Part shown: positions 6,797-49,684 of the stretch, piece after piece
Layout of the letters: each line of letters opens with the position of its first letter
Numbering within the stretch: position 1 is the stretch's first letter
Source: Octopus bimaculoides
Lineage: Eukaryota
DNA length: 51,914 nt
Direction: 5' to 3'
Assembly (NCBI RefSeq): GCF_001194135.2
Contig: NC_068997.1
Span: 48,674,022 to 48,725,935 of the forward strand
Position numbers and translations under genes: made by a program
The notes under the pieces: model-generated
What the model saw: only the letters and a program-made list of their open reading frames with translations
Told to the model about the DNA's origin: nothing
The model's database searches: none

Positions 6797-6874
6797 TTAG
6801 TTCATTTTATTTGGAACAAGAGGTATGTTGCTACACGTCTGCATCTGTGCTTTCCGGACCCGTACAGATTTTCT
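6797..6874 (-). CDS. Probable terminal coding exon ([25 protein letters not shown])
   Basis: Acceptor after ~30 nt of pyrimidines (ttttcttctttttctttag|AGA); phase 0 matches the preceding exon; TAA at 6797-6799. Confidence 0.58.
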   Translation of the reverse strand, partial: RKSVRVRKAQMQTCSNIPLVPNKMN

Positions 6875-9055
6875 CTAAAGAAAAAGAAGAAAAAAAACAA
6901 AGAAAATTTAATAAAACCAGTAATGGCTCCTAATTTAGGCACAAAAACAACAATTCTGAAGCGGGGGTCAGTCAGTCGATACCTTTGAAGGAAGGGAGTT
7001 AGTTGCATGTTTGTCGCCCATACTTAAGGGATAAATCACTGATTAAATCGGGTTAGAGTATCCCCAAACCTCTACCACTCGCTGTTTTTGTACTGGAGTC
7101 CCGTGCATCAAAAGGTAAGTAATAAAGCTACTGGTGATGACATGTCAGCGTGGACCTAAAATGCACGAAGTGGGTAGGACGTGAGTGGAGTTGAGGGACA
7201 GTTCGGAGCATCAAAATAATAATGATGAAGCTATAAGCTTGGGAACAAGAGATGCAGGGATGCGGTAGGGGGTGGGAGGTGAACGTGTACAGGCGTACCC
7301 CCTGAAGTTTTTAGAGAACAATATAACTGCTTCGTGCATCCTCCTGAAAAACTTAATCACTAAAACAAACAAGAGTTGACTGATTCGAAACAATATTATT
7401 GGACTTATCAGATTCGATTCATGGAAAAGTGTAATAATAAAATTTCTACTATAGGCATACGGCCTGAAATTTTCGGGGAGGAAATAAGTCGCTTAAATCG
7501 ACCCCAGTGTTCGACCAGTATTTATACCAGTGATATGGTACAATGCAAGAGGTATGTAGTTCCTATGGTGTAAAATAAATGTGCATACTCGAGGAGGAGA
7601 TAGAGACACTTCAATGAAATGTGGTTTGGGATATTTATTTTTCATACATACGAGGCCATTAACTCACTCGCAGACAAGCATGCAGCACAAACATGCATTA
7701 ACAGAATGATGTATAATTACAAACACAAACATCATATATATACCGTAAATCATCGAGTATAATCCGCATTTTTTTCCCCAAAATTTAAAGGTCAAAATCC
7801 CTAATGCGTACTATATACGAGGTTAAAAATAAAAAATATTTTCTAAGCAATGTCCGAGTCTCTATTTGCTGTCCGGTAATGTTTATTCAGACACATTTTG
7901 TGATGCCGGGCGCGAAAATACCTTAAGATAATACCTTAAGCTAGATTTATTTTTCACTGACGTTATTACTGTTATTTCTTTATTTTCTGCAAACAAAATG
8001 CACAAAAATGCTACACGTTTGCATTATGTTATATATACAATAATAATAAAGGACGTTACCGTATATATGTTTACAAACCAAGGACGTTATATAGACCTCC
8101 TTGACTCAAGTTAGAGAAGGGGTGCGTATTATACACAAGGTTTAGGCTTTTCAGAGGTACAGTCTCCCAAAAATCCCCTGCGTATGATACTCAAGGGTGG
8201 ACTATACTCGAGGGTTTACGGTATATATATATATATATATATAAATGTGATATACTTACACTATCTTTTCTTTTACGTGATTTGCTTTTGATAAATAAAC
8301 CTTTAAATTTGTTCATGAAAGTCTGGAAAGAAAGAAATTAAATATTTAAGGTGAAGCAAGAGCGGATTAAGAAAAACACAGACACATATCTATATAAAAG
8401 GAATAGAAAAAGTTCGAACACCGGTTATGGCATTCAAACTTCGTTTCTACGGCTAACTTGTGAAGTCAGGCCAACTACGACAGCAAAGAGACACCAGAAG
8501 TGTAAACGTTCAAAATGGTAAAGAAGACACGTGTAAAATGTTGACAGAGATCTCATTGTAAATATATGTGTGTGTGTGTGTACAAAACTTCAAAGTTTCG
8601 GCCTGCAATCGTTAGTCAGAGTGAAATTCGACGACGGGTTGTGGGCCGAAACCTCGAAGTCACTATCATCCCTGTTATTGTAAAAGTAAAATGAAAATGT
8701 GGTGTGCAAAACGTATTGTGAAATTCTTCAGTTTTAATGTTAAATTGTTAGTTTTACAACGCGATAGAAATATAAACATAAATGTGTTTGCGCATGTGTG
8801 TGTGCGCACGTATACATTGTAATAGAAAACGTGTCATTAATATTTTCTCGCTGTCATAGAAACAGAACACTTTAAGCCCCACCACCACCCACACACACAC
8901 TCTACCACCACCACCACCACCACCACCAGAATTTCGCATTCAGCTATAAAAACATAAAATTATGAAATGAATACTTACTTTTTCTAATTCAGCTGAATAA
9001 AAAAGAGAAAAGAAAAATTTTAACATAGTTTTACTTTTACATGTTTGCCTATGAA

Positions 9056-9108
<53 letters not shown>

Positions 9109-9426
9109 ATCTCTCTATCTCACTCATATAAATATATATGTATGTATGTATGTATGTATGTGTGTGTGTGTGAGTGTGTGTGTACAAATATATGTGACAG
9201 AGTCAATACCTATTGACGAGGTATCAGAAATTTAAAAAAATGTCAATGGGTGGAAATCGAACCGGTGTATGTGCTAATTAATAAGGCATTAAAGCAGAAT
9301 AAATTTCCTAAGATACAACAATATGTGTGTGTGTTTGTGTGTGTGTGAGTGTATTTACACAAACACACACATATACACATATATGCACATATACGTAAAT
9401 ATACATATGAATATATACATATATAC

Positions 9427-9457
<31 letters not shown>

Positions 9458-9474
9458 CATATATATATACATAC

Positions 9475-9511
<37 letters not shown>

Positions 9512-10498
9512 TACATATACATATGAAACAGGAAGAAACAGTGAGAGAAAGTTGGGGCGAAAGAGTACAACAGGGGTCTCCACCACCCCCTGCCGGAGCC
9601 TCGTGGAACTTAGGTGTTTTCACTCAATAAACGCTCTCAACGCCCGATCTGGGAATCGAAACCGCGGTCATCTGACCGTGAATCCGCTGCCCTAACCACT
9701 GGGCCATTGCGCTTCCACAAAATAAAAGCACCCTTTTAAAGCCTAGCCAGGCTTATGGGCCCGGTTTCCCGGTTTCAATGGCGTATGTGTTCCCCAGCTG
9801 GACGGGACACCAGTCCATCGCAGTGTTACTCCTTTTTGCCAGCTGAGTGGACTGGAGCAACGTGAAATGAAGTGTTTTGCTCAAGAACACAACGCGTCGC
9901 CCGGTCCAGGAATCGAAACCACAGTCTTACGATCATGATGCTGACACCCTAACCACTAAGCCACGCGCCTCCACTGTCTGAATTATACAGCGATGTCCTT
10001 TTCTTTTTTANNNNNNNNNNNNNNNNNNNNNNNNNNNNNNNNNNNNNNNNNNNNNNNNNNNNNNNNNNNNNNNNNNNNNNNNNNNACGTAATCAACAATA
10101 GATCAGTATATATAATTTTCAAAACAAATAAGTAAATGAAACTGAAAAAGAGAGTGAGGAAATAAAACAAAATAAATAGATAAATAAAAATTCATCGATT
10201 ATGTCACCGCTGTGTGGTAAGAAGTCTGCTTCTCAAGCATATGGGTCTAGTTTCTGTACGACCGCGTGGAAAATTGGGCAAGTGTCTGCTCCTATAGCCC
10301 CGGGTCGACCAAACACTTGTGAGTGGATTAGGTAGATGGAAACTGAAAGAAGCATCTCTGAATGTTTATATATATATATATATATATATCAGTCGCCATG
10401 ATTAACCGCTAAATTCACTAGCTTTTTTTAAAATTTTCCCTCTGTTTATTCCCTCGTGTTCCTCTGTGTTACATCTCTCTACCTCTACCCATCCAGCA

Positions 10499-10532
<34 letters not shown>

Positions 10533-11246
10533 ACATCCATCCATCCACGTATTTATATATGTATGTCTAAAAAGTAATGTTCGCTACTACTTGAATATGG
10601 CTGGTCCATATGGAACGACGTTACAATTATCTTTTAACCGTAAAAGAACCTCTTTTCCGGCTGGTTAACGACAATCAGTGTGTCCGATATTTTGCAATAT
10701 ATCCAACTGCAGAAGATGTTCTCCTGGGGTTAAAGAATAGTAGTAACGTCGTTCCATACGTGACAGCCATGTTGAAGTGGCAACAAACATTACTTTTCAG
10801 TAGAGTTAATACTTTCATCTCTTATAGTGATTTTAGAACTAGCTACTTTGTTTATGTATGTGTATGGATTTTGCTTTGTATTTAGTTTGCAAATGTGTTG
10901 AAACGAATTTTGTTATAATTGGGAAAGTCATCATGCCAATCGATGGTAATGAAAACGCACGTTGGTTCAATTTCACATCTTTATTTTCCTTCCGTTGGTT
11001 AGTTATTTAATCAACTAAGTAATCGCTTGCTTGTTGTAGTAGAAAGTATGTCATTGACAATGTCGTGAATAGCGAGGAAAGGACTTGGACAAAATCTGGT
11101 TCATTGATGAACCGACTGATTAAGCATTCGATAAGTTAGTTGGTTGACAAATAATAAAGAATAATAAACAAGTGAAAATGAATCAGCGTGTGTGTTTATT
11201 ATTTGCCTAATGACCCTCACAAGAATCAATACATACACATACATGC

Positions 11247-11283
<37 letters not shown>

Positions 11284-13290
11284 TGTGTGTGTGAGTGTGT
11301 GTGTGTGTATGAGTGTCTTGTTTGTGTTGTGTATCTTCTCTACTACTTCTTCATAACCGGTATTTGTTTGTTTACGTTTAGGAAACAGCAGTTCGGCAAG
11401 AGACCGAGAAAGTAAGTAGCGAACTTTAAAGATGACATATGTACTTGGTTTGATTTGTTAGACTAAAGCCCTACAAGGCATTACTCCAGTGCAGCCACAG
11501 CGCGATAACTTAAACAAGTAAATAGTACATATCATTCACACACTTTTTCCACAATGATGTTTTGTTCTTCACTTTCATACATTGAAGTTCAATATGACTG
11601 TAACGTCCACAATATAGTTACTACCTTACAAACTAATAACGACAAGTAGGAACATAAATATTTTGGTATCATTAGAATGGAGGAATCAGAAACAGCTCAG
11701 TGGAGGCGAAGTTTTGGGGGTTTTTCTCTCTCGTCACTACCGCAATATTAACAGCCCACAACACCTCAATCACATCATTAAGCAGCTATCATCCTTCGAC
11801 TACCTTGGAATTTTGATCACAGAAGACGCAAAATATGTGAAGGAGATAAAAAGACGAATAGTACTGGCAAAGTCTGCGTTCTCAGAATTGTATAACATCT
11901 TGAGAAACAGTACTCTGAGCATCAAGATCAACATCTGTATATTGAACTGCTATGTCTACCTTGTGTTAATGTATGGAAGTGAAGTATGTTTTAGGGCATC
12001 AGAATTGAGAAGGCGTTTGTAAAAATGGTTCTTAAAGAGACTATTGACGGTAGCATGGACAGATAATTTATCTGATGAAAAAGTGATGATCCTGGCTGCG
12101 GTAAGTAAGAAACTGCTATGTAAGATAATAGCCAAGTACTGAGATTTCTAGCTTGTGTGATGAGGAAAGAGGGTCTGGAGAATTTAGTGACGGTCGGACA
12201 GATTGAAGGGAAAAGAAGCAGAGGTAGGAGGAGGCTGCTATGTAAAGTTTGATGAATTGGTTCGAAGAAGGAGGTGTTAAGTATCAGAAAGTGGAACTGT
12301 TACAGAAACAAAGAATAGAGAATTGTGGCAGGACATGATTGCCTATGTCCTATATTCTGGACAAGTCACATACAAGAAAGATAACACTAATATACACTCT
12401 AAACTAAGATAAAATGTTAAAAATAACACTTACTGATGATCTGCGTCGCGATGCACTTGCTAAAACGAATATAAAGAACAGCATATCAAATATATATAGT
12501 TACATACAAACAAGTTTTAAGATCACATCAAATATGTTTAGCAAATATTTCGCTTCTAAAGAGGCAATTTTCAATGCAGTTTGCCGCGAAGAAAAATTTT
12601 CGATTTATGTAAAAGGTATTAAAACATTAATAGTAATTTCATAGTTCCATATATTGACAGGACAATGCATTTCAGAGTGACCCATGTGACCCGAACAATG
12701 CATTTCAAGCTTTATAGTTATCGCCATTACCGGATACCAAGAGAGACATAACTTTCCAAGTCATAACTTCCTTAGAGACAAGTAGTAGAAATTATTCACT
12801 GACTTCGTGCGACGCTGCCAGTTTTGAACAGATCCTATAGTAGGCAACCGAAGCAATGTTGTGAAATAAACAAATATTTAGAACGGTGCAAATGTGTTTG
12901 GGACTTGTTATGCTTCTATATATTTTTATTATTTGCGTACTTTGTTGATTCTGTCCACGACATAGACACGCATACACATGTACAAGATGACATGTAACAA
13001 CACATGTCATCTTCGATTACGGTCACATTGAAACGGATATATCATAGGTTGCCTGAAGCAAGTTATACAGGCTTTTGTTTTTGCGTGGTTTAAAAAGGTT
13101 AGTGGTTTTGTAATATATACATTACATGATAATTTGTAGTTACACAAACGTAAGACACTAGATAATTGGTTTAATATGCATTTATAGCCAGAAGCCATTA
13201 CATCGACTATTATACTTAACACGAAACAAACTGCATAGAAAAACATTTGAAAAACACGTTGATTACAGATTGAATACCTTTACACACACG

Positions 13291-13331
<41 letters not shown>

Positions 13332-14503
13332 GTATATATATATATTAACGTCTATTCTTCAACCGTTGCTCAGATTCCTTCCAGGCGTTTCTTGAACTTC
13401 AGTTCTGANNNNNNNNNNNNNNNNNNNNNNNNNNNNNNNNNNNNNNNNNNNNNNNNNNNNNNNNNNNNNNNNNNNNNNNNNNNNNNNNNNNNNNNNNNNN
13501 NNNNNNNNNNNNNNNNNNNNNNNNNNNNNNNNNNNNNNNNNNNNNNNNNNNNNNNNNNNNNNNNNNNNNNNNNNNNNNNNNNNNNNNNNNNNNNNNNNNN
13601 NNNNNNNNNNNNNNNNNNNNNNNNNNNNNNNNNNNNNNNNNNNNNNNNNNNNNNNNNNNNNNNNNNNNNNNNNNNNNNNNNNNNNNNNNNNNNNNNNNNN
13701 NNNNNNNNNNNNNNNNNNNNNNNNNNNNNNNNNNNNNNNNNNNNNNNNNNNNNNNNNNNNNNNNNNNNNNNNNNNNNNNNNNNNNNNNNNNNNNNNNNNN
13801 NNNNNNNNNNNNNNNNNNNNNNNNNNATATATATATATATATAATTACTAAATGAATAAATATTAGAAAATATTTATATAGATATTATTCTTAATTATTA
13901 TTTTTAGTAAAATGAATAATAAACAATAATAATACAGGTGGCAAACAAGCAAATGACGATAAATGGCAAATTCAAAATTTTATAATTAATATATGATTAT
14001 AATAGGGCACACATGGTGCCAGCATTGTTGTAAAAACCAGTGTCGAAAAATTACCTAAGAAACCCACGAACTACTGGAAAAATTAGAAGCACAACAGAAA
14101 TCAAAGCCCGAGCAAAGGAATTAACTAGCATCTCGATAGAGAGTCGTAGAATGAGGAAATAGATATTCCTGGATCAATTGATTTCGAAGTTTGAGAGTTT
14201 GCCTCCCTTAATTCTCATCAGCAGGTGTCAATATATACCTAAGTCTCGCTATTTACCTAGGGTTATATATATATATATATATATATATGCACATATATTC
14301 TTTTATTCTTAATTGTTGCAGTTATTTGACTGTGGCCGTCCCGGAGCACTGCCTTTAGTCGAACGAATCGACCTCAGGACTTATTCTTTGTAAGCCTAGC
14401 ACTTATTCTATCGCTCCCTTTTGTCGAACCACTAAGTTACGGGACGTAGACACACCGACATCACTTGTCAAGCGATGGTGAGGGGATAAACACAGACACA
14501 CAA

Positions 14504-14538
<35 letters not shown>

Positions 14539-17500
14539 AATATATATATATATATATACGAGGGCTTCTTTCAGTTTCCACTCACAAGGCTTTGGTCGGC
14601 CCGAGATTATAATGGAAGACACTTGCCCAAGGTACTACGCACTGGGACTGATCCCGGAACCATGTAGTTGGGAAGCAAGCTTCTTACCACACAGCCACAC
14701 ACACACACNNNNNNNNNNNNNNNNNNNNNNNNNNNNNNNNNNNNNNNNNNNNNNNNNNNNNNNNNNNNNNNNNNNNNNNNNNNNNNNNNNNNNNNNNNNN
14801 NNNNNNNNNNNNNNNNNNNNNNNNNNNNNNNNNNNNNNNNNNNNNNNNNNNNNNNNNNNNNNNNNNNNNNNNNNNNNNNNNNNNNNNNNNNNNNNNNNNN
14901 NNNNNNNNNNNNNNNNNNNNNNNNNNNNNNNNNNNNNNNNNNNNNNNNNNNNNNNNNNNNNNNNNNNNNNNNNNNNNNNNNNNNNNNNNNNNNNNNNNNN
15001 NNNNNNNNNNNNNNNNNNNNNNNNNNNNNNNNNNNNNNNNNNNNNNNNNNNNNNNNNNNNNNNNNNNNNNNNNNNNNNNNNNNNNNNNNNNNNNNNNNNN
15101 NNNNNNNNNNNNNNNNNNNNNNNNNNNNNNNNNNNNNNNNNNNNNNNNNNNNNNNNNNNNNNNNNNNNNNNNNNNNNNNNNNNNNNNNNNNNNNNNNNNN
15201 NNNNNNNNNNNNNNNNNNNNNNNNNNNNNNNNNNNNNNNNNNNNNNNNNNNNNNNNNNNNNNNNNNNNNNNNNNNNNNNNNNNNNNNNNNNNNNNNNNNN
15301 NNNNNNNNNNNNNNNNNNNNNNNNNNNNNNNNNNNNNNNNNNNNNNNNNNNNNNNNNNNNNNNNNNNNNNNNNNNNNNNNNNNNNNNNNNNNNNNNNNNN
15401 NNNNNNNNNNNNNNNNNNNNNNNNNNNNNNNNNNNNNNNNNNNNNNNNNNNNNNNNNNNNNNNNNNACCTAAAGCACCACGAAGCTCCGGCAGGGGATGG
15501 TGGCGAACCCTGCTGTACTCTTTCACCACAACTTTCACTCTTCTGTTGTGCCTGTAATTCAAAGGGTCAGCCTTGTCACACTGTGTCACGCGGAATATCC
15601 CCGAGAACTACGTTAAGGGTAGACGTGTCTGTGGAATGCTCAGCCACTTACACGTTAATTTCACGAGCAGGCTGTTCCGTTGATCGGATCAACTGGAACC
15701 CTCGACGTCGTAAGCGACGGAGTGCCAACAACCTCTAAACCAATGTGAAAGTCGAAGTTTGAAAATTCAGTACTTTTACGTAACACGATACTCGATTCGT
15801 GCAAGGAAGCAATGATTTCCAACTCTCCCTGCCCCAAGAACAGCGCACAAAACAACTACAGTACATTACAATACCAACATCATAAAAGTCTGAAAATAAT
15901 ACTTACTAGAGTGTTAGCCCGGCCACCTGAAACAGATATATATACATACATATATCAACTTATAAAGACATACGTGATTATACACATACACACACATATA
16001 TATATATGCGTATGTGTTTATATAAATAAATATATACATATATAAGAATAAAGGATAAAATTTCTTCAAAAAATGTATCGGTGGCCAGCATATAAAAAAT
16101 AGATCATATATATAATTATAATTGAAGGCATAGAAAAAAATTTCTAGCCTCTATGCAAAAAATAGACGCTAAATCGTCTCAACACTTAAAAATTCACAAA
16201 GTTACACACGTGTTGAAATCGAGGGTGCAGGCTAACGGAAATTAATAACAATATAGATAGCCTTGGATTAACTAATTTCTGGATTTGCCCCATGGCTTTT
16301 CTTTCTTTAGCAGGACACATATTTATACATACCCACAGGAAAGCAAACACAAATCCATACCTTCTTATCTTTTTATTGCCCACGAGAGGACAAACAAGGA
16401 CAGACAAAGGGATTAAGTCGATTACATCTACCCCAGTGCGTAACTGGTACTTATTTAATCGACCCCGAAAGGATGAAAAGCAAAGTCAACCTCGGCGGAA
16501 TTTGAACTCAGAACGTAACGGCAGACGAAATACTGCTAAGCATTTCGCCCCGTGGGTTAACGTTTCTTATTTCTTTATTGCCCACAAGGGGCTAAACATA
16601 GAGGGGACAAACAAGGACAGACAAAGGGACTAAGTTGATTACATCGACCCCAGTGCGTAACTGGTACTTAATTTATCGACCCCGAAAGGATGAGAGGCAA
16701 AGTCAACCTCGGCGGAATTTGAACTCAGAACGTAACGGCAAACGAAAATACTGCTAAGCATTTAGCCCCGTGGGGTAACGTTTCTGCCAGCTCACCGTCT
16801 TCTTACCACACAACCATATAAATACCCCAGATACTTCCAACACTAAATTTCGTAGCTTACCTCGGCATATGCGTCTTCGGTCGTAATAGCACATAGGCAG
16901 CTATGCTGCCACTGCGACCGAATACGCTCGTGTTGAGGTAAGCTGCGAAATTTATTGTTGCGGGTATCTGGGGTATTTATATGTAGTTATGGTGACTTTG
17001 CATTTGTTGATTCAACAATGTGGAGAAAAATATTAAAATAACTGTGGTCTCTTTGTTTCAACAATATTATATATGAGAAGGCATCTTGCTTAAAACGTTA
17101 ATACGTTTTGATGCTTGTTAGTAATGTCTTATAACAGAAAAGGTCTACTTACTTATTCTTGATTGGCAGTTCATATAATCCTTTAAAAGAGAAACAGACA
17201 GTGGAATATATTTACTTATTGTTAAAACGAGATGTAATATTAATTTCAGGCGAATTCAGAATATGCAAAGAAGAATATAAGAAACAAAACAATTAAATCA
17301 TGACAGAGTTATCACCTTTAAAAAAAAGTCAGATTTACTACACCCTAATGCCAGATAGATAGATAGATAGATAGATAGATACATACATACATACATACAT
17401 ACATACATACATACATAAATACATACATATATATTTCGTTTTTGGATTTGGTCTGCAAGATTCTTTATGTGAGTTCGTGTGTTGAAGCATATTCTGTTGC

Positions 17501-19749
17501 GTGGGGAGAGTCATTCTCTTTTGGTGCCTTATAATTTAACACACTCACCGTTAAAATTTCCATGTGTTTCTTTTTTTATTTTTCTAAAATTTTCGTTGCG
17601 TCTTGCAACCTTTTCAATAGTTTTGAAACTCAAAACTATTGAAAAGGTTGCAAGACGCAACGAAACTTTAAAAAAAAATTAAAAAAAGAAGCAAGTGGAA
17701 ATTTTTCCGATGAGTGTGTTAAATTACAAGGCACCAAAAGAGAATGACTCTCCCCAGACACAATAGAATATACATACATATAGATATATAACTACGAGGG
17801 GATACCCAAAAGTAACCGGAAATGTTCACTGTGGGACAAGCCCATTATTGTTTAGGCTTTTGCCGCGAGAAGCCAGTTGATGAGACCCTCAAGCATCAGT
17901 CTGCCGACTTGCGTCATTGTTTGGGGTTGTACTACAAAGTGGAGCGCCTTTATTTTACAGTTCTTCTCCCCTGTTCGTCGAATTTTGCGATGACTGAAAC
18001 GAAGGAACAGCGTGCTTCCATGGAACTCTGACCATAACCCTGACCCTAAGTTGGTCTCTTGCCTTTTAAAACCCTCTTTCTTCTTCTCTTTCTAATCTAC
18101 AGTCTATTCTGAAGAAGGACTCTCCCCGAAGCAACAAAACAATTAACTGCTCCCGTAAACTTACTCTGTCTATTTTACCTCCTATTTTATCTTTTTATTC
18201 TACGGTATATACATAATGAGTAGGCGTATTTACAGGTAATTAGTGATCAGGTTAGAGGGGGATATCTAGAAATCCAACGTCAAACAAAGGTGGAAGAAAT
18301 TCAAACAAACACGAGTTGGCTATAAGCAATGTACCGGTCGACTAATAGAAGTACGTTAAATAATGGATGAACAGGCGGTTGTTAAAGGCATCAAATCATT
18401 TATGAAATAGTTATGCAGAATAAAGAAGTGAGTATAAATAATATTAAGGAGGAAACAGGAACATCAGGAGAGCGAAAGTTCACTGTAGACTTCATGTGTA
18501 TGATGATATTCTGAAAGTCAATACTTTAATATTACGGATAAAAATATGAAAGAATCCGTAAAGTTCTAGGTACTTGTTGTTCATAGACAGGAAGATACAA
18601 GGCGCACTTCTAAAGGTTTGAAACATTTTTGAGAGAGGCATTTATTGATTTCAAAGAAGTACAAAACTCTAATCTCCTTCGAAGTAGGATTCTCTGACTT
18701 CAATGCACTTTTTGTAGGGATTCAGCCATGATGTAAAATGGTGCTAGGTATTATATATGAAAGTCCGCCATATTATTGCTATAGTCAGCGTTTCAACATT
18801 AAGAACATCGTACACGGAGGCTTACAGTGAATATGCCTTGCATAGTCTAATTGCGAACAGCAGGTTAATTAGGGATACTATAGGGATGAACTTAAATACT
18901 TTATTACAGCTTAGCGCTTTACTGTGGCTATTGTCACACTAGAAGTATCGTATACTCCTACTACAACCTTTCGAAAATATTGAAAATAATACTCACATTT
19001 TCGGTTCCGTCATCTCCGCTCGGTAGAGCTGAAAAAAAAAGAAGAAATACATAAATATATCAAATACACACTATAACACATTCAGTTCTATGGATAAATA
19101 TATTTCGTGTGACAGGCTAAGTCATGAACTTTACAACCTTTATGGTTTCTACGGCTGGATTCCTTTCCCACGCCAATCATTTTACAGAATGTGTTATGTG
19201 CTTTTATCTGGTACCACACGAGCGTTTTTATGTGGCACCGGCACGAATGCTTTTTACGTGGTACTGACAGAAGACTCTTACAGGCCAATCACCTTCACCT
19301 GGGAGAGTGGGCTTAGCACTTCTGCCGTGTGGTACGGGTCTTCTTGGGAAGACCAGGTGGTGCAGCAAAGCGATAGTAATTAGTTCTTAATATATGCAGT
19401 AATTGTATCATTTTTGAGATAGATTGCCATGGCCTTTATGGTGTATGTCTTTGACATCTCTGTTCGTAGAGTGAGCGCTTAGCTGGCGCGAAGTATCTAG
19501 GACGCTTGTGGACGACACTCGTGTGCAAAAGATTTGATGGTGTTAACTATATAGAAATGGGTTTCAATAGAGGTAGATGTTCTTAGCTCGAGGTCTGCTT
19601 TAAAGAATCATCGAACCTCTATTGAAACCCATTTCTATATAGTTAACACCATCATATCTTTTGCACACGAGTGCAATTGAGTACTGGGGTCGATGTGATC
19701 GATTATCCCCTCTCCACAGATTCTAGCCATTGTGCTTATAGTAGAAAAG

Positions 19750-19785
<36 letters not shown>

Positions 19786-22530
19786 GAAGTTGCAGCCAGA
19801 AGAACATAGTTATTGAAATTGAAATAATATTTTTGTCAGATACACGAGGACAAGTTGAGTGTCTCATACTAGGACCATGCTTACAGGGAATAAAATAAAT
19901 AGTACGCAAGATATGCATTTTTCTTTACAAAAACAGAAACGAAGGGCTGAAAAAGAAAAACAGTAGGAAATTTTGGACGCTTACACTGCCATTTCTTCTC
20001 CCTGGCATAAACTATTCTTCTACTTTCAAGTGTAGGGGCAGATTTTCTATCGACTGGAAAAGAAATAGTAAGGAATTTTTAAAAAAAATCTGTTATATGC
20101 AACAGAAGCAGTATTAGATTCAAATAGATATTTGTGTATCATACTTAATGTAAATACATCGCGAAAAATCAAATTTACAATCTTGTAGTATATAGCTTGC
20201 ATTACAGACATGAATTCTCTGAATTTCATGTCGGTATTAGGTGTAGAGAGACATTGGGGCCAATTTGTTTGATGATCTTTTTCGCAATTGATTTCCAGTT
20301 TGCTTTATAGAAGTCCAGATTGGTTAGATTTTAAATGCTTTACGTAGGCTGCATGTCTGCGGGTTTCTTTAGTCTATAAATGCTCAGCTCTATTATATTG
20401 TAATCCGAGACTAGCGTCGGTGTCTTTCATTTTCTTCGCCAACGAAATGCAGAAAAGGTATGATATACGGCTAATTACTTCTAAAGTGTATATGAGAAAA
20501 AAATGAACTAACGTGAAGCGTTAATTTGCTCAATGGTTAATATATTATAATTTAGAATGTTTACTTACATATACCGGGACCCTAGAAACGAAAAAAATAT
20601 ATAACAAAGAATATATTAATTTGCAGCGAGGTCAGCGAAAAATAACCGAAAAAAAAAAAAGAAAGCAAAACAGAAAACAAAATAGAAACCGAAACTATTG
20701 ACACAATTTAAATTAATTCTTTCGTTTTTAAAAATTTGATGTATTATGGGATGCGCAAAATATATTTCCCTTGTATCCATGTATTATAATTAATACACAT
20801 TCCCATTTAATTTTGACCTCAGGAGTAGCTAAAAGCAGAGCTTTATATAACTTTCAACGAAACAAGGTACATGCGACGATCACGTGCTACACACCTGCAT
20901 TCCAGGCACAGCTGTAAATAGCAGAAGTGAGCTAGAACATTAAACCTTAGTACACATGCACTGTAGAGATCAAGGTCAATTTTTGCCCACGATGGGCTTC
21001 ACTGCACGTGTTTTAGTTTCGTTACTATGGCAACAGCGAGGATAGTTATTGAACAGTCCTCGTATATATATATTTATACGGTGAAACTTAATTTAATTAT
21101 AAATTTTGCTGAATTGAATTTAATTGAGTTTTTACCTGTAAATTTGGATTTTTATCCTTAATATTATATATATATATGTAATGGATAATAAAACAAATGG
21201 TTTACACCTGGTAGCTTACAGGTAAAGCACGGTCACTTTCAGAGTGATCGTTAGGTAAATAACAAATGAAAGAAAGACAGAAGAGAAGTCGATGCTAGAT
21301 GTGTCGAAACGATTGTTGTTATTAATAATATATTCTCGTATATACTCCATCTTCTGCCTTTCATTCGTNNNNNNNNNNNNNNNNNNNNNNNNNNNNNNNN
21401 NNNNNNNNNNNNNNNNNNNNNNNNNNNNNNNNNNNNNNNNNNNNNNNNNNNNNNNNNNNNNNNNNNNNNNNNNNNNNNNNNNNNNNNNNNNNNNNNNNNN
21501 NNNNNNNNNNNNNNNNNNNNNNNNNNNNNNNNNNNNNNNNNNNNNNNNNNNNNNNNNNNNNNNNNNNNNNNNNNNNNNNNNNNNNNNNNNNNNNNNNNNN
21601 NNNNNNNNNNNNNNNNNNNNNNNNNNNNNNNNNNNNNNNNNNNNNNNNNNNNNNNNNNNNNNNNNNNNNNNNNNNNNNNNNNNNNNNNNNNNNNNNNNNN
21701 NNNNNNNNNNNNNNNNNNNNNNNNNNNNNNNNNNNNNNNNNNNNNNNNNNNNNNNNNNNNNNNNNNNNNNNNNNNNNNNNNNNNNNNNNNNNNNNNNNNN
21801 NNNNNNNNNNNNNNNNNNNNNNNNNNNNNNNNNNNNNNNNNNNNNNNNNNNNNNNNNNNNNNNNNNNNNNNNNNNNNNNNNNNNNNNNNNNNNNNNNNNN
21901 NNNNNNNNNNNNNNNNNNNNNNNNNNNNNNNNNNNNNNNNNNNNNNNNNNNNNNNNNNNNNNNNNNNNNNNNNNNNNNNNNNNNNNNNNNNNNNNNNNNN
22001 NNNNNNNNNNNNNNNNNNNNNNNNNNNNNNNNNNNNNNNNNNNNNNNNNNNNNNNNNNNNNNNNNNNNNNNNNNNNNNNNNNNNNNNNNNNNNNNNNNNN
22101 NNNNNNNNNNNNNNNNNNNNNNNNNNNNNNNNNNNNNNNNNNNNNNNNNNNNNNNNNNNNNNNNNNNNNNNNTGATCTCATATCAAGATAAACAACTCAT
22201 GACCTTGCAGGTGGGGCCCAGTTAGAATTTTCTTCAGGTCGAGTAACCCGTCCCGCTCAAAAGGTTCCTGAATAAGATTTGTTTAAGGATGTTGAGCAAA
22301 ACACCCATGTTTCCAAAGGTGAATTATTCAAACCCCAAAGAATTCCTCTCAACACATGGCTATGATGCTCCCCCACTACTTCTGCTCATGATCAGAGATG
22401 CACATATCATCAGCCACCAAGGGACATGCTCAACTGGTTAAGGCCAAACAAGTGACAAGCAAATCTGTGGTATTGAGCAGAATATTTATTATTATTATTA
22501 TTTAGCCCTTGTGGCCAATAAAACGAATTA

Positions 22531-22587
<57 letters not shown>

Positions 22588-24609
22588 TCTCCCGTCGCTA
22601 CGTTCTAAGTTCAAATTTCACCGAGGTCGACATTCGGGATCGATTAACTAAGTACCAGTTACGCACTGGGGTCAGTGTAATCGACTTACTACCTCCCCGC
22701 AAATTTCAAGCCGTGTCCCTATTGTTATTATTATTATTAGTATTATTATTATTAGTAGTAGTATTATTATTATTAAATCTGCATACTTGTTACAATCCCT
22801 TGTCGAGAAACACCCAGTGCAAGTGAAGGATAAGTGATGTTACAGTATGACTGAAAGTTTAGGAAAGGAAAATGGCAGGACCAGTAGCGAAATATCTTCA
22901 TGTAATATAGCACAGACATTTAAATTGATAAGGTTTTTCTAAGGATGTGGGCGCTACTTGTTAACACAAACTTTTGGACTTCTCTAAGACATGGTTCTCC
23001 TGGGATATTATCTATATATTTCGGGCGTCCCTTTCTTATCATACCTAGGGTACCCACAATAACAAGAACAGTTCTCTACATGTTTTGTATTTCAATTTCC
23101 AGGTCCTTATATTTACTTAATTTGTTACATTCATTTACAGATACACTTGTTATCAGTGGGAACACTTGCTTCTATTAGCATACAAGTATTTTCTTCCCTG
23201 TCTTTAATGACTATGTCTGGTCGATTAGTCTAAATCGTTCTGTCGGTGTTGACTGGAAAATTCCAGAGGATAGTGACATTTTTACCTTCAACGACTGGCT
23301 CAGGATAATGTATGCTAGTAAGCAGGAGTGTTGATTTTGTAGTGTCTACATATTTTCCGATGTCCTACTGTCCTACCCCATCGCGGCTATTTTTCTATTC
23401 GTTTGGTGTAAGTAAAGGCATCTTGAAACGGGATGGTCTATTATTTCGTCAAATGTATCGCAGAATCTGCATTTACAGTCAGAACCGTTTGGAAAAACGT
23501 TAGCCTGCTGGTTTTTGGTAAGCAAGCTTTGATATTTTGCTGTCAATTGCTTTCAGTCCTGAGCTTCTCAGCTACTGATGGATTGTTGCTTGGTCTACAT
23601 TTTGCAAAGATTCAGCGCTGAGCTACTGAAATAAATACCTCGTTGTGTCGTATGTTCCGCTCAGTAACACAAATTTGCTTGCCAGTTGCTTGACCTTAAC
23701 CACTTGAACATGTCCGTTAGTGGCAGACAATATGTGCATCTCTGATCCTGAGCAGGCGTAGTGGGGGAGCATCATAGGCATGTGTTGAGAGGGTTTCTTT
23801 GAGATTTGAACAAATGTAATAAAAGCAAAGTTTGAAGGAAATATTAGCCATTTTTCATCCTTTCTAGGGGAAAGCAAATAGGAAATAACAGTTGCAACCA
23901 AAGAACAAAAATCGTGTTCCACAGTATTATCAGTTACTTATTTCGTTCTTGTAATTGATCTGCACGATTCTTAATGTGAACACGTGTGTTGAAATATATT
24001 TGGGTGTATCTGAGGAGGGTCATTATGCAAATAATAAACACACATCTCAGGTTCTATTCGCGCTTCTATGTACTTTTTAATCTGTCAATTGGTTAAATAT
24101 CAAACCAATTGTTTGTTTAATCGTTCGGTTGCTTAATCAATCAGCTAAATTTGTTAAAGCCATCGTCATTACTGACCTCGCCAATGTCATGCCCACTTAA
24201 ATCCACATCTGTCTCAAATCCGAGCGCGCGCGCGTATGCGTTTATTTGCATAATGACCTCCCAAGATACAACAAAATTAGTTACTTAAGCTAGCAGGAAA
24301 ATTATTTCTGTCAACTTACTGTTGAGGATGTTGTCTTTTGCGACAGAATTTGTGATTTCTTTGGGAGAGTTTTTCTCTGAATAGAGATACAAATTTTCCA
24401 AGAAGTTGTCCATCATTACATCTGGGGTTACCATTGTCAACATTGATGTGAATATTGCTTCGGGACTGCCTTCACGATGAATGCAGAATGTCTTCCGTCC
24501 ACTGAGACCTTCTAAATAACAAAAAAAAAATCACTCAGTATGAAAAGATGGTATACATCGAACACAATTAAATTTGTAGGAAAATAGAGCACAAAAACAT
24601 AATATTAAC

Positions 24610-24640
<31 letters not shown>

Positions 24641-26279
24641 GTAGTAGTAGTAGTAGTAGTAGTAGTAATAATAATCCTTTTTTATTAAAGGCACAAGGCC
24701 TGAAATCCGGGGATGGAGAGAGGACTAGTCAATTACATCGGCACCGGCGGTGTTTCACTCGACTCGAAAGGATAAAAAGTAAAGTCGACCTCGCTGAAGG
24801 TTGAACTCAGAATGCAAGAATGGACGACGTGCTGCTAAGTACTTTGTCCGGCAAGCTAACGATTGTGCCAGATCGTCGCCTTTAACAACAACAACAACAA
24901 CAGCGATAATAATAATAATCCTTTCTATTGTAGGCACGAGGCCTGAAATTTGTGGGGACGGGGATAGTTGAAGGTATCGACTACGGTACTCAACTGGAAC
25001 TTAATTTATCGACCCAGAAAGGATAAAAGGTAAAGTCGATCTCGGTGGAATTCGAACTCAGAAAGTACAGACAGACGAAATACCGCTAAGATTTATGCTC
25101 GGCGGGCTAACGATTCTACCAGATCACCACCTCAATAATAATTTCTACTTGAGGCACAAAGCCATGAAAATTTGGGGGGAAGGGGGCTAATCGATTACAT
25201 CAACTCCAATGCATAACTGGTACTTATTTCATTGACCCCGAAAGGATGAAAAGCAAAATCGACTTCGGTGGAATTTGAACTCAGAACGTAGCGACAGACG
25301 AAATATCGCTAAGCATTTCACCCGGCGTGCTAACGTTTCTGTCAGATCGCTGCCTTAATAATGATAAGTAAAATGGCAATTTTGCAAAAAGAGAGACCGA
25401 TAGAATAAGTACCAGATGTGGAAAAAAAAAAAGCATTGAGGTCAATACGTTTCGACCAAACTCATTCAAGGTGGTGCACCATTATGACCGCCGTCAAATG
25501 ACTCTAACAAGTAAAAGATAGCAGATTAATGGTAGAAATGAAGATTCGGATGTACAGATGAGTAAAATCGAAGAGACTAACTCTGACTTGTTATCATAGA
25601 GGTTTTCACCTGGACACATAAACGCGGAGTGATTGAAGATATAGATGAGATAATGGAAGCCGTATTACGTACTATAATTTACTTACCCGGCATTTCAGCA
25701 GAGAAAATACTGGAGGTCACCTTTTGGGCTGGTATAGCTTCTTCAATTTCGTTTACTTTAACATGAATCTTCTCATCGACATCTATGTTAAATATGATAA
25801 AAATCGTCGACTGGCCCTTTGAAGAAAAAAAGTCGTACGTGTATATGCAGGAGTATATATGCAGATGTAGGCGTGACTATGGGGTAAGAAGCTTGCTTCC
25901 CAACCACATGTTTCAGGGTTTAGTCTCACGGCGTGATACCCTGGGCAAGTGTCTTCTGCTAGGAGCCTCGAACTGACCAAAGCTTTGTGAGTGGATTTGG
26001 CAGACGGAAACTGAAAGAAGCCCGTCGTATATGTGTATATGTATATATGTATATACCTATGTGTGTGCGTCTTTGTCTGTATTTGACCCCAACACAACTT
26101 GACAACCGGTGTTGGTATGTTTACATCCCCGTAACTTAGCGGTTCGGCAAAAGTGAGCTGTAGGATAAGTACCAGGCTTAAAAAAAGAATAAGTGTTGGG
26201 GGTCAATACATTCAACTAAAAATTTCTTCAAGGCGGTGCCCCAGCATGACCGCAGTCAAATGACTGAAACAAGTAATAT

Positions 26280-26321
<42 letters not shown>

Positions 26322-29300
26322 NNNNNNNNNNNNNNNNNNNNNNNNNNNNNNNNNNNNNNNNNNNNNNNNNNNNNNNNNNNNNNNNNNNNNNNNNNNNNNN
26401 NNNNNNNNTATTATATATATATATATATACACATATATAATTTAATTCATAACCATTTTTATTTACTTATTTTTATGTTTCCGCAACCCTAACTGGCACT
26501 TCGTCGGTTACGACGACAAGGGTTCCAGTTAATCTGATCAACGGAACAGCCTGCCCTTGAAGTTAACCCACAAGTGGCTAAGCACTCCACAGACATTCGC
26601 ACCCTTAACGTAGTTCTCGGGGAGATTCAGTGTGACACGGAATATAAAAATGCTGGCCCCTTTAAATTACAGGTACAACTCATTTTTGCTTTCTGAGTGG
26701 ACTGGAGCAACGTGAAAACATGTGACTTGTTCAAGAACACAGTGCACCGCCGGGAATCGAACCACTAAGTCACTCTGCAACCCTAGGATTCTTAAGGCCC
26801 GTTACGTAGTTTCCGTATTTTCTAAGTGACTGCAATTTCAGCAAAGCCCATGAACGGAACACCGATTCCTTGCCGGGTTCAAGGCTAACAATTTTTTCGG
26901 TCGAGTCAAATCGATTACATCGACGCCTAAAACTGACTGGTACTTAATTTTCTCGACTCCGATGAGTTGAAAGGCAAATTTGATCTCAGAATATAAAGCA
27001 CCAGAAGAAATTCCGCAAAGCATTTTGTCCGACGTGCAAACGATCCGGCCAATTCAAGGGATTATGTGAGATGCACTATTTTGTGTTCTCTTATAGTTTA
27101 TTGTGATTTAATGGAAACAGATTAACGTCCGCGCAGTATTTACAATCTTTTTTGATGGACCTAACATGCTTTCAAATTTTGGTAAAAGGTCATCGGTTTT
27201 AAGGGCGTGATAAGGCGATTACATGGAACCCAGTATTTAACAAGTACATATTGTGTCGATTCTGAAAGGATGATAGGTAAAGTCGACCTCGGCAGGATTT
27301 GAACTTAGAATGTAAAAGAGTCGGAAGAAATACCGCTAACCGTATCGTCCAACACGTTAACGATTCTGCCACGTTGCCGTCTTTATCCTGGAAATAATAT
27401 AGTTTGTATACTCAGCGGGGAGCTGGCAGAATCCTCAGCACGTCGGACAAATGCTTAGCGGCATTTCGTCCGTCCTTGCGTTCTGATTTCAAATTTCGCC
27501 GAGGTCAACTTTGCCTTTTATCTTTTCGTTTCGGAGTCGATAGAATAAGTACCAGGTACGCACTGGGAACGATGAAATCGACTAACCCCCTTCCCACAAA
27601 TTTCAGGCCTTGTGTCTTTAATAGAAAAGATTATTAAGGCGGCAATCTGGCTGACTCGTTAGCGCGCTGGAGAAAATGCTTAGCGACATTTCGTCCATCT
27701 TTATGTTTTAAATTCAAGTTCCGCCGAGATCGACTTTACCTTTCGTCCTTTCGGGATTGGCTCGATGTAATCAGCTACCCACTCATCAGAGGTTTCTGGC
27801 CTTCTGCCAAAATTTGAAACCAATATATTGCTTGTATATTAGTGTAGCCAATTTTGTTTTTTAGTCAGGAAGACAACTATTTACAACTTCTCAGCAACTG
27901 GTGAGAAGAATGTATCGTCCAACCAAGAAATAGTCCACATTCTTACCACAGATTAGACTCCGATAAAGGTCCACCCTTCGGGTGCCAAGCAGTGATGTTA
28001 AAATGAGCGACCGATCAAGTCAACCAAATACGACATGGTGGAATTTGAACTCAGAATGCAGAGATGAAACGCAACAAATATTGCAACATATTCTGCTCAA
28101 ACATTGTTATATTTCTGCCGATTCACGTAAAAGTGAAAAGCAAGTCGACCATGGCGGGATTTCGACTCAGATCATTGAGTGCCTGATTAAATCTTCTGTT
28201 TTAACGACTCCACTGATTTGTCGTCTAAATCTTTCTGTGGTACATGTGACTACACTCAGAACATTTGTAATCGTTTTACTACGCTTGCCATCTCTGCTTG
28301 TAGATGCGCTCTGATTAATTCTTGTATATTTGACTTCTGTTCGTGCATGTCTTTTTTGTCACTGGTTATTAGATTTGATATCTGTTCATGTTTCTCATAA
28401 GAATTTTGGTGATGCATTTTTCCCGTGTTACTTTCTAGGTGGAGGGCCTAAATTTGAAAACAGAATGGTCTAAGAACACTAAGATAAATAGTTAAACAGT
28501 AAAACAACGGTGAATAATATCAGCAAAATTACAACTTACAATAATGAACAGGCGACACCAATGTCATCTCAATGATTAGCCAGAGATGACTTTTAAAATG
28601 AGAACATCTGAAATAAATTCGACAGCTCTCACAAACGAGAATACTAAAATGAACCCGATCGCTCTTAAAAATTAAGTATTAAAAAAACGGTAGAATGATA
28701 CAAAATCCTTGTCCGGTTTTGGATCGATTCCAAAATTGAATCAGTTCGTGCCAGTCACAAGGCCAAACATCCCTGAAAGTTTCATCCGAATACGTTCAGT
28801 GATTCTTGAGATAACTTGTCCACGGACAAACAAACAAACAAAGACGTCCGCAAACAATACCTCCGCCTTAGCGAAGCCGGATGTAAGCAAAAAAGAAATA
28901 GAACGAAGACAAAAAGCAGAAAAAAAAACACTAGAAAATAAAAGGTTTTTATGTTTATTTCTTTCTATTCAAACTGTCTACTTACCGGGTATAATATCTC
29001 TGGTACAACATCAATGCATATCAATCGGCCATCCATGTGCAAGTACTCCTCTTCCTCCTCAACAAATTGATCGCTTGCAAAATATTCGTAATCTTCAATG
29101 ATGCAGAGCAGTAGTTCACGAACGTTTTCTGGCGTTGACTTTAATTCTACTACATTTGAAATGTTGAACAGAAACTGCTGAAGACAAGACTTAATTTTGA
29201 CATTCGAATAAAATATGTTGAAAAATCCGAAATTGGATTCATTTGCTATCAAAATTGGTTGAAGATTATACTCCATGCCCGGCGATAATATAATGACCTT

Positions 29301-40247: not shown

Positions 40248-40594
40248 ACAGGGAATGTAGTGGAACCTGTAGTACCCTACTTTGGGATTAAAAGCTACAC
40301 CAACCATCTCGTCCTTCCCATCAAGAATAAGAACTAAATATTAATATAAGTATTCAATAGCTTACAATATTCCAATATGGTGCTAATCGCTTCAGTGATC
40401 TGCAGGATGTACATATGGAGGTGTTAAAAAAAAAAATAACAAAAGAAAAAAACGGAAACATGATAATATTTGATATAGCACTAGCGGGGTTATCTAAGTA
40501 TATACATGCAATTTGCCATACGGAGTTCTTTCCCTTAAATTATTTCGTTTAATATATGTATATATGTATATTTAATTGTAAAGTAATGAGCATA

Positions 40595-41715: not shown

Positions 41716-42714
41716 AAAGGTGGAAAGTGGAAAGGTGATCACAATGGCGGTGCTCCAGCATGGCCACAGTCATTGGGCTGAAACATATAGCAGAATAAAA
41801 GAATACATACATACATACGCATACTTATATTTATACATACGTACAAGCATTTATGCATATATACATGCATGCAGGCGTATATATATATATATATATATAT
41901 ACATGCATGCACGTATACATACATAATGCATACATGCATATGCATTCATATTTACATACATACATGCATACATGCATGCATACAGGCGTACATACAAGCA
42001 TACGTAATCCATACGGGCGTACATACATGCATACATACATGCATATATACAGGCGTACATACATATATNNNNNNNNNNNNNNNNNNNNNNNNNNNNNNNN
42101 NNNNNNNNNNNNNNNNNNNNNNNNNNNNNNNNNNNNNNNNNNNNNNNNNNNNNNNNNNNNNNNNNNNNNNNNNNNNNNNNNNNNNNNNNNNNNNNNNNNN
42201 NNNNNNNNNNNNNNNNNNNNNNNNNNNNNNNNNNNNNNNNNNNNNNNNNNNNNNNNNNNNNNNNNNNNNNNNNNNNNNNNNNNNNNNNNNNNNNNNNNNN
42301 NNNNNNNNNNNNNNNNNNNNNNNNNNNNNNNNNNNNNNNNNNNNNNNNNNNNNNNNNNNGTATGTATGTATGTATGTATGTATGTATTATGTATGTATGT
42401 ATGTATGCATGTATGTATGTATTATGTATGTATGTATGTATGTATGTGTGTAGATTTGTATTTTTTGTTTTGTGCACGTATTTTCATGCATATACTAGCA
42501 TGTCTGGACAGGCTCACATATACTTGATAAACGAATGGAAAATTTTATCTGTATGTATGTGTATGTATTTATGTATGTATATATGTATGCATGTGTATGT
42601 ATGTATATATATGTGTGCGTGCGCATGTATATACGTGTGTATGTATGCATGTTTGTATGTATGTGTATGTATGTATGTGTTTATGTATGTATGTGCGTAT
42701 GTATGTATATATGT

Positions 42715-48706: not shown

Positions 48707-48790
48707 TTATGGTCTTTCATTTATTCTCTTCGGTAAAATTGGTGGCACTATATTATCTAGATACGAGCTTATCTTTTGTCTGTTGATGAG
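48707..48790 (-). CDS. Probable terminal exon of the upstream gene (LINRQKISSYLDNIVPPILPKRINERP*)
   Basis: ttttccttatttgcag|CTC; phase 0 matches; TAA at 48707-48709; minus-strand AATAAA at ~48616-48621. Confidence 0.55.
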   Translation of the reverse strand, partial: LINRQKISSYLDNIVPPILPKRINERP

Positions 48791-49639: not shown

Positions 49640-49684
49640 TTTTTGGTGATTACTTCGTTGATTTCTGATTCTTATTTGTGGAAC
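49640..49684 (-). CDS. Exon of the upstream gene (VPQIRIRNQRSNHQK)
   Basis: ttgttgtttgtttcag|GTT...AAA|gtaagc; 45 nt; only phase 0 is open. Confidence 0.6.

Follow-up and report, generated by a model that had tools for sequence, protein, structure and literature searches.

The Octopus bimaculoides gene LOC106871447, located on the minus strand of chromosome CM046617.1, raises the question of whether a series of very short segments lying beyond the end of its annotated coding sequence are real exons, and if so whether they are joined in a single order or in alternative combinations. The locus was analyzed within a 51,914-nucleotide (nt) stretch of RefSeq assembly GCF_001194135.2 (contig NC_068997.1, forward-strand positions 48,674,022 to 48,725,935; hereafter ‘the window’, to which positions below refer), and the corresponding part of CM046617.1 in assembly GCA_001194135.2 (L001) is 100% identical to it, with the same runs of N. 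A preliminary description of this DNA had proposed that nine segments of 13, 69, 32, 28, 20, 19, 26, 14 and 63 nt, spread over approximately 12 kb, encode a combinatorially spliced and probably disordered tail on a signaling adaptor of the BCAP/Dof family. We conclude, with a probability of about 0.85, that the segments (apart from that of 19 nt, discussed below) are genuine coding micro-exons of LOC106871447, and that they belong to a tail of ∼160 residues that is encoded by twelve short exons in one fixed order.

All nine segments were located directly in the sequence, on the minus strand, at the described sizes and with the described splice signals, and none of them touches an assembly gap. 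Each is preceded by a pyrimidine tract and an AG acceptor (an unusual AAG in the case of the 28-nt exon) and followed by a GTAAG or GTGAG donor, the exception being a GTAATT donor at the 19-nt segment. Exon 4 terminates at position 24320 with one base over. Direct reading confirmed that the chain from exon 4 through the 69-, 32- and 28-nt exons is open, as is the chain from the 14- and 63-nt exons into the terminal exon. Two routes described for the intervening region (the 28-nt exon followed by the 19-nt segment, or the 20-nt exon alone) are likewise both open, and joining 28, 20 and 19 nt leads to a TAG, as had been described.

A search with exons 2 and 4 matched the RefSeq protein of this locus (XP_014773406, here P0001) and a 340-amino-acid model from O. 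vulgaris (CAI9735092, P0002), and nothing else. An exhaustive HMMER search with P0001 yielded four distant relatives (P0003 to P0006) at 27–29% identity, and a profile built from the relatives of P0001 led to a 430-amino-acid protein of O. sinensis (LOC115221096, XP_029647171.1, P0024), which covers 99% of the hypothesized full-length O. bimaculoides protein at 61% identity. Mapping of P0024 to the O. sinensis locus (L002, gene span 47.6 kb) gave, from exon 4 onward, exons of 192, 92, 13, 69, 32, 28, 20, 28, 23, 31, 17, 63 and 66 nt plus stop, with AG acceptors throughout (two of them AAG) and with GTAAGT, GTAAGC or GTGAGT donors in the tail. The O. vulgaris product CAI9735091 (431 amino acids) falls in the same 90% cluster as P0024, and its gapless locus (L006) gives identical exon sizes. 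Both of these orthologous proteins are annotated ‘uncharacterized’ or ‘hypothetical’.

Eight of the O. bimaculoides segments (13, 69, 32, 28, 20, 26, 14 and 63 nt), together with the terminal exon, align to their O. sinensis counterparts with AG and GT positions conserved, and the same eight and their splice sites are retained in O. vulgaris, including the AAG acceptor of the 28-nt exon. Exon sizes are identical across the species for the 192-, 13-, 69-, 32-, 28-, 20- and 63-nt exons; where O. bimaculoides and O. sinensis differ (26 versus 23, 14 versus 17, and 78 versus 69 nt for the last exon) the difference is in every case a multiple of three. The ninth segment, of 19 nt, is found in neither the O. 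sinensis nor the O. vulgaris model. Alignments between the O. bimaculoides and O. sinensis loci run colinear for 22 kb, and the domain order and a 16-exon plan are common to all three octopus genes. Colinearity, shared exon boundaries and similarity over the whole protein identify the O. bimaculoides gene, at the level of sequence comparison, as the orthologue of LOC115221096. The same chain is thus held by two independent annotations, one by NCBI (O. sinensis) and one by a genome project (O. vulgaris); since annotation pipelines normally place 13-nt exons only with the help of transcript alignments, both models were presumably guided by transcripts. The reading frames assigned to the 69-, 32-, 28-, 14- and 63-nt and terminal exons in the preliminary description agree with the orthologues, but those assigned to the 20-nt exon (VAGLTL) and the 26-nt exon (SKCIATQII) do not, the orthologous frames reading SGRANTL and (A)SASRRRSS.

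Three exons of the orthologous models, of 92, 28 and 31 nt (exons 5, 11 and 13), have no counterpart in the readable O. bimaculoides sequence. When they were sought in the read part of the window with O. sinensis exon-plus-flank queries, the only matches were to simple repeats, together with a 25-nt flank match that abuts a gap at position 10088. Synteny places all three within runs of N, where they would be hidden from any reader of this assembly; a fourth gap (14709–15466) corresponds to an O. sinensis intron without an annotated exon. With the hidden exons given in brackets, the order is exon 4, [92], 13, 69, 32, 28, 20, [28], 26, [31], 14, 63 and the last exon, the successive phases are 1, 0, 1, 1, 0, 1, 0, 1, 0, 1, 0 and 0, and the whole chain closes. 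Because synteny puts three coding exons in gaps, this continuity of frame cannot be read from the O. bimaculoides assembly. The apparently clean junction between exon 4 and the 69-nt exon is a coincidence, since the hidden 92 nt and the 13-nt exon add up to 105 nt, or 35 codons. Because the 28- and 31-nt exons are concealed, the stretch from the 32-nt to the 26-nt exon seemed to require a repair of the frame, for which the preliminary description offered two solutions.

The current RefSeq protein is 280 amino acids in length (four accessions share its sequence, P0001 and three others) and spans positions 38631 to 24285, passing through a perfect A/GTAAGT donor at 24320 into the following intron and stopping at a TAA at 24287–24285. 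The model probably ends early because exon 5 lies in unread sequence, which would make extension impossible. It is a truncated model, and the real product is orthologous to the ∼430-residue proteins of the other two octopuses.

An O. bimaculoides copy that is itself truncated or decaying would also account for a 280-residue product. Its 92-, 28- and 31-nt exons would have been lost, the protein would end after exon 4, and the remaining micro-exons would persist as relics or as exons of a 3' untranslated region; the four RefSeq accessions, the lack of any exon-5, exon-11 or exon-13 sequence readable in the window, and the presence of a terminal-inverted-repeat element of ∼250 bp just past exon 4 (24262–24014) are all consistent with such a history. 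All three absent exons, however, project into unread gaps and not into read sequence, and decay fits poorly with the tail exons that can be read, which keep open frames and intact splice sites and differ from their orthologues by indels of multiples of three. Read in the frame of the orthologues, the tail of O. bimaculoides contains no stop in 108 comparable codons, and comparison with O. sinensis gives an omega of 0.56 for the tail (dS 0.37), near the value of 0.51 obtained for exons 2–4. The tail is under moderate purifying selection, and we regard decay of the gene as decidedly unlikely.

Between the same two species the tail exons are less similar (272 of 349 positions identical, or 78%) than their 60-nt intron flanks (875 of 1052, or 83%; both summed from per-exon counts), and several of the downstream flanks are 90–98% identical. 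Either constraint on splicing signals beside the exons or a rapidly evolving tail could account for the difference. A profile of the tails of three relatives scored the O. bimaculoides tail at 16.9 bits, compared with a maximum of 12.4 bits among 5000 composition-matched shuffles, and this match spans the last exon and that of 63 nt. When the window was searched by tblastn with the distant relatives, a single weak tail match was obtained, to the last exon (E = 2), and significance was reached only by the profile when set against the shuffles.

The proposal that the tail is spliced combinatorially, with interchangeable middle routes (28 plus 19 nt, or 20 nt alone) that would yield alternative peptides, derives from the two open routes in the read sequence. 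O. sinensis likewise has the AG and the GTAATT that bound the 19-nt segment, but the block that surrounds them is 84% identical between the species, as is expected of ordinary intron. Alternative products are annotated nearby, in the form of a second O. vulgaris isoform that skips the 13-nt exon and of at least three isoforms of a neighboring paralogue in O. sinensis. The orthologous chains are nevertheless linear: they join the 28- and 20-nt exons, which the two routes had treated as alternatives, and leave out the 19-nt segment, which opens with TAG in the orthologous phase. The frames that the routes require for the 20- and 26-nt exons mismatch the orthologues, where alternative frames match, and no frame repair is needed when the two exons hidden in gaps are included. 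Free skipping would also break the frame, because only two of the eleven internal tail exons have lengths divisible by three. Finally, none of the eight exons that were read carries a TGC (UGC in the transcript) within ∼20 nt upstream of its AG, although one precedes the 26-nt exon at about −23. Interchangeable routes are therefore very improbable. The tail would instead be included essentially constitutively, as judged from the number of annotated isoforms and from the phases, which alternate between 0 and 1 such that skipping of a single exon shifts the frame.

The annotated proteins comprise one form in O. sinensis and, in O. vulgaris, the full form plus one frameshifted variant, CAI9735092, a shorter isoform of the gene whose longer product is CAI9735091. 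Rebuilt from O. sinensis sequence, this variant extends exon 5 by 15 nt to a GTAATT donor (adding VSLFS), joins it directly to the 69-nt exon and onward to that of 32 nt, both read out of the normal frame, and ends within the 28-nt exon. A second model thus contains the junction between the 69- and 32-nt exons, and omission of the 13-nt exon is among the annotated forms. The variant may be a real, switch-like isoform, or it may be an artefact of annotation or alignment caused by the 13-nt exon. We also considered whether the peptide that follows exon 4 in CAI9735092 (SKIKLG...FNPF) might result from intron read-through, with the O. bimaculoides sequence past 24320 representing a decayed copy of it. 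That reading was rejected: the peptide is encoded by a separate 92-nt exon located 3 kb downstream in both O. sinensis and O. vulgaris.

Splice-like motifs do arise readily in such DNA, and we counted pairs of strong sites using a simple weight matrix (acceptor of at least 9.5 bits and donor of at least 5 bits, 10–75 nt apart). The minus strand of 6797–24320, of which 15.5 kb is read, contains nine such pairs, as compared with ∼1.2 expected from the six found in the other 78 kb of strand-sequence; the excess is specific to that strand and persists across thresholds, and we regard it as supporting and not decisive, because the thresholds were picked after the candidates were known. Although AT-rich sequence yields many GTAAG and pyrimidine-AG matches, and other pairs of like score (for example 19946–19885 and 19298–19282) are not exons, we give next to no credence to the segments being chance motifs in intergenic or intronic DNA, given this excess, their exon-by-exon orthology with two annotated species and the homology of the tail to that of a cuttlefish cDNA. 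Recursive splice sites (AG/GTAAGT) were considered and rejected by eye, since none of the exons starts with GTRAGT, the closest approach being the weak GTGGCC of the 20-nt exon.

Several points weigh against a tail of twelve coding exons in fixed order. For O. sinensis and O. vulgaris the proteins come from computed gene models, and the RefSeq model of O. bimaculoides contains none of the tail micro-exons. The spliced tail peptide matched nothing among 5.8 billion protein clusters. The three hidden exons are placed by synteny and were not seen. Introns of O. bimaculoides and O. sinensis are themselves 80–93% identical, and conservation alone therefore cannot separate exons from introns. Constitutive inclusion is deduced from phases and isoform counts, and the functions suggested for the tail motifs are read from sequence.

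If the exons are used as proposed, recognition of those of 13–32 nt across introns of 1–4 kb would depend on donors close to the GTAAGT consensus, on extended U-rich tracts and on conserved intron flanks. The short linear motifs of the resulting tail could then allow the adaptor to dock onto endocytic partners, SH2 or SH3 domains, or membranes.

The folded part of the protein was examined using an AlphaFold model of P0024, computed from a 12-sequence alignment. It contains a confident alpha/beta domain (residues 10–135) followed by a beta-sandwich (residues 150–232). The predicted local distance difference test score (pLDDT) falls below 50 at residues 251–278 and 300–407, and only short helices are present within 251–407, in agreement with the earlier suggestion that the tail is disordered over most of its length. 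Residues 411–430, encoded by the last exon (6874–6797 in O. bimaculoides), form a short helix with pLDDT values of 85–88, and the conserved end of the protein (RKSxRVRKAQ...PxxP) may pack against the folded domains.

TIR_3, the BCAP-type TIR family, was the sole Pfam TIR model matched. Six family members (P0001, P0002, P0024, P0005, P0025 and P0004) match it below threshold, at 12.5–23.4 bits against a cut-off of 26.1, with only the first 40–60 residues covered. In Foldseek searches the N-terminal domain matched flavodoxin-like folds, as TIR domains do, and the solved BCAP TIR domain was outside the top 50 fold matches. The best domain-level match for the sandwich was the DBB dimerization domain of BCAP (6SWS; E = 2.9e-5, template modeling (TM) score 0.61–0.69), generic TIG/Ig domains being nearly equal (2CXK, TM 0.68). 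Searches of the family proteins for the Pfam DBB domain at E-value limits of 1 to 10 gave no match, nor did any Pfam ankyrin-repeat or coiled-coil model match them, and P0001 found no match among PDB sequences.

Four conserved features can be recognized in the tail. Exon 5 contributes an NPF or DPF motif (KFNPFG; GLFFNPFSE and GLYVDPFSK in relatives), a classic type of ligand for EH domains or AP-2. An acidic tyrosine motif spans the junction of the 32- and 28-nt exons (TEN/DYMNC or DEN/VYINS; DENIYESI and EDNYYEMI in relatives). The 63-nt exon encodes a hydrophobic and polybasic stretch, and the last exon encodes RKSxRVRKAQ followed by a PxxP-type motif. The tyrosine context varies: O. bimaculoides has YMNC, the other two octopuses have YINS, P0003 has YESI, and P0004 alone has YYEM; no conserved YxxM of the kind that binds PI3K p85 was found in the tail alignments.

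Exhaustive HMMER and profile searches found relatives in cephalopods only. The C-terminal tails of P0003 to P0006 resemble the 63-nt and terminal exons. P0003 is an uninterrupted open reading frame of 379 amino acids on contigs of 1.6–1.9 kb that were assembled from RNA-seq runs, one of these runs being from Sepia esculenta larvae (SRR20545811; PMC10466719). A search of the literature on cephalopod micro-exons, molluscan BCAP-like TIR proteins and micro-exon genes outside schistosomes found no paper describing LOC106871447, its orthologues or cephalopod micro-exon chains.

The octopus protein resembles BCAP (PIK3AP1), BANK1 and Dof (Stumps) in its TIR-like N-terminus, its DBB-like sandwich and its disordered tail with tyrosine and proline motifs. 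Unlike members of that family it has no ankyrin repeats, no coiled coil, no Pfam match to DBB and no conserved YxxM, and its length of ∼430 residues is about half of the ∼800 of BCAP. The resemblance to the BCAP/Dof adaptors extends to the order of a TIR-like and a DBB-like domain and not to the remaining hallmarks. On the basis of the model, the protein resembles a small cytosolic adaptor with a miniature BCAP-type layout (TIR-like domain, DBB-like domain, motif-bearing tail), and we do not assign it to BCAP, BANK1 or Dof. To our knowledge, no BCAP-family gene is known to encode its tail in micro-exons.

Two other systems had been offered as parallels. The octopus gene shares with the micro-exon genes (MEGs) of schistosomes, the best known example of such an arrangement, a run of very short exons that encode a disordered, fast-evolving region and are often missed by annotation. 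MEGs encode secreted products, most of their coding sequence consists of micro-exons, and their exons are symmetric and skipped combinatorially (cf. PMC10399815). In the octopus gene, by contrast, only two of the eleven internal tail exons (69 and 63 nt) are symmetric, with phases alternating between 0 and 1; a 458-nt exon gives the product a TIR-like domain, and not a signal peptide, at its N-terminus; the tail accounts for ∼160 of ∼430 residues; and one full-length isoform is annotated per species. The likeness to MEGs consequently fails for exon symmetry, secretion and the extent of the micro-exons, which form the tail only.

With the neural micro-exons regulated by SRRM4/eMIC, the octopus gene has in common exons of 13–32 nt set in long introns with conserved flanks. 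The neural exons are isolated and mostly in-frame cassettes, with a UGC near the 3' splice site and inclusion in neurons (cf. PMC8797185), whereas those of the octopus gene form a contiguous chain and are mostly out of frame when taken singly. With no UGC within ∼20 nt of the AG in the eight exons that were read, and with lengths that are mostly not multiples of three, the octopus gene lacks these hallmarks of the neural program.

A further pattern was observed within the tail, parts of which resemble three tandem copies of a two-micro-exon module (28+20, 28+23/26 and 31+17/14 nt), each pair summing to a multiple of three (48, 51 and 48 nt). In L002 the first exons of these modules are at 40555, 44167 and 51025 (28, 28 and 31 nt) and the second exons at 41966, 47559 and 52835 (20, 23 and 17 nt); those read in the window are at 17180–17153, 15926–15907, 12459–12434 and 8992–8979. 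Among all 66 exon pairs, the three that can be formed from the first exons have the most similar acceptor contexts (ttctcttt[t/g]a[a/t]ag; 0.64–0.72, against a mean of 0.44). The introns on the donor side of the second exons resemble one another too, though less clearly. It is conceivable, though we consider it rather doubtful, that the tail is an array of duplicated modules whose units can be skipped whole, with the 13-nt exon acting as an on/off switch (its skipping leading to a frameshift and truncation, as in CAI9735092). If that were true, frame-safe splicing at the level of modules would vary the short linear motifs of the adaptor combinatorially, in a manner unlike that of schistosome MEGs, within cephalopod-specific BCAP-like immune adaptors.

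The chain of exons is already implicit in the database models of O. sinensis and O. vulgaris; what is new is its recognition, the corrected O. bimaculoides model and the definition of the family. In the corrected model the last third of a protein of ∼430 residues comes from twelve short exons, three of them lost in gaps, and the locus provides an example of how assembly gaps and micro-exons together can mislead annotation pipelines and readers alike. The exons of 13–32 nt belong to a series of ten short exons in succession, with introns of kilobase size between them, and are conserved with the same boundaries in three octopuses; they form an unusual natural substrate for studying recognition of very short exons outside the neuronal program. 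The family itself, an undescribed and apparently cephalopod-restricted group of TIR-like and DBB-like adaptors with motif-bearing tails, is relevant to invertebrate innate-immune signaling. Coordinates of the exons and of the gaps predicted to contain exons are collected in Table 1.

Table 1. Exons of LOC106871447, and assembly gaps predicted to hold exons, in transcript order (window coordinates)
Feature	Position	Strand	Basis
Coding exon 1 (MAMSNDRKD + 1 nt)	38604..38631	-	Translation identical to P0001; GTAAGT donor
Exon 2, TIR-like domain	28986..29443	-	P0001 match; tblastn matches from P0002 to P0006; Pfam TIR_3 sub-threshold
Exon 3, first half of DBB-like beta-sandwich	25687..25816	-	P0001 match; Foldseek match of modeled domain to 6SWS
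Exon 4, 192 nt, ends in phase 1	24320..24511	-	True donor at 24320; length and boundaries as exon 4 of O. sinensis and O. vulgaris
Assembly gap, predicted exon 5 (92 nt, KIKLGTKFNPFGNLDSKTMGNFLENVTKIL, family NPF motif)	21369..22172	-	L002 block 28503-28817 aligns to 22173, the gap edge; exon 5 lies 403 nt beyond in L002; placement predicted
13-nt exon, phase 0, GGT CCC GGT ATA T, GPGI(F)	20569..20581	-	12/13 nt identical to O. sinensis, with same AG and GTAAGTAA; also in O. vulgaris
69-nt exon	19985..20053	-	Orthologue of O. sinensis 69-nt exon (DRKSDPTLESRRKVYSKNKKWL); splice sites identical
32-nt exon	18997..19028	-	Orthologue of O. sinensis 32-nt exon (SEPERDSNDEN); junction with 69-nt exon also in second O. 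vulgaris isoform
28-nt exon DYMNCQSRI, conserved tyrosine motif	17153..17180	-	Orthologue of O. sinensis VYINSQPRI; AAG acceptor kept in all three species
20-nt exon, SGRANTL after 28-nt exon	15907..15926	-	Orthologue of O. sinensis 20-nt exon (SGRSNTI), 17/20 nt
19-nt segment, outside annotated coding chain	14055..14073	-	In neither O. sinensis nor O. vulgaris model; true phase starts TAG
Assembly gap, predicted 28-nt exon (G[RG]EKPEKKQ)	13409..13826	-	Synteny blocks stop at 13928 and restart at 13384; 2.1 kb between them in O. sinensis, with exon at L002 44167-44194; placement predicted
26-nt exon, true frame (A)SASRRRSS	12434..12459	-	Orthologue of 23-nt exon (AADRRKSS) of O. sinensis and O. 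vulgaris; donor same, acceptor one codon off
Assembly gap, predicted 31-nt exon (DGASNLEKRN)	10011..10085	-	O. sinensis upstream intron flank aligns to 10112-10088, abutting gap; exon start ∼56 nt further; placement predicted
14-nt exon (x)ELEK	8979..8992	-	Orthologue of 17-nt exon (SDAENK) but lacking one codon; same splice sites
63-nt exon, hydrophobic and polybasic	8260..8322	-	53/63 nt identical to O. sinensis; fits tail profile of cuttlefish-type relatives
Last coding exon, ends TAA at 6797	6797..6874	-	Orthologue in O. sinensis and O. vulgaris; tblastn match of distant relative P0005 starts exactly at first codon of exon

The window also contains the last two coding exons of the neighboring paralogue, the orthologue of O. 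sinensis LOC115230293 and O. vulgaris CAI9735093, again on the minus strand. A 45-nt exon at 49684–49640 (VPQIRIRNQRSNHQK) has strong splice sites, and the terminal exon at 48790–48707 (LINRQKISSYLDNIVPPILPKRINERP, followed by a stop) is 84% identical to P0006; the tail of this paralogue is therefore also made of short exons. The annotated isoforms of the paralogue in O. sinensis exhibit cassette differences, such as an insert of 18–19 residues (PEPHSRKRAEMRQNIDYRG).

Several repeated elements lie within the introns of LOC106871447. The element directly downstream of exon 4 (24262–24014, minus strand) resembles a miniature inverted-repeat transposable element and is bounded by 21-nt terminal inverted repeats (GGGAGGTCATTATGCAAATAA and TTATTTGCATAATGACCCTCC), and a second long palindromic element was spotted by eye at approximately 17720–17520. 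Exons 1 and 2 are separated by a large intron that contains a transposon remnant, an open frame of 221 codons at 32791–32129 (minus strand) with a match to the HTH_48 domain of Mos1/mariner transposases (E = 3.4e-6). Inspection by eye also revealed repeated segments resembling tRNA-derived short interspersed elements (for example tggcttagtggttagggtg and ggtttcgattcc) at 16800–16400 and 9990–9640 (minus strand), in introns between the micro-exons.

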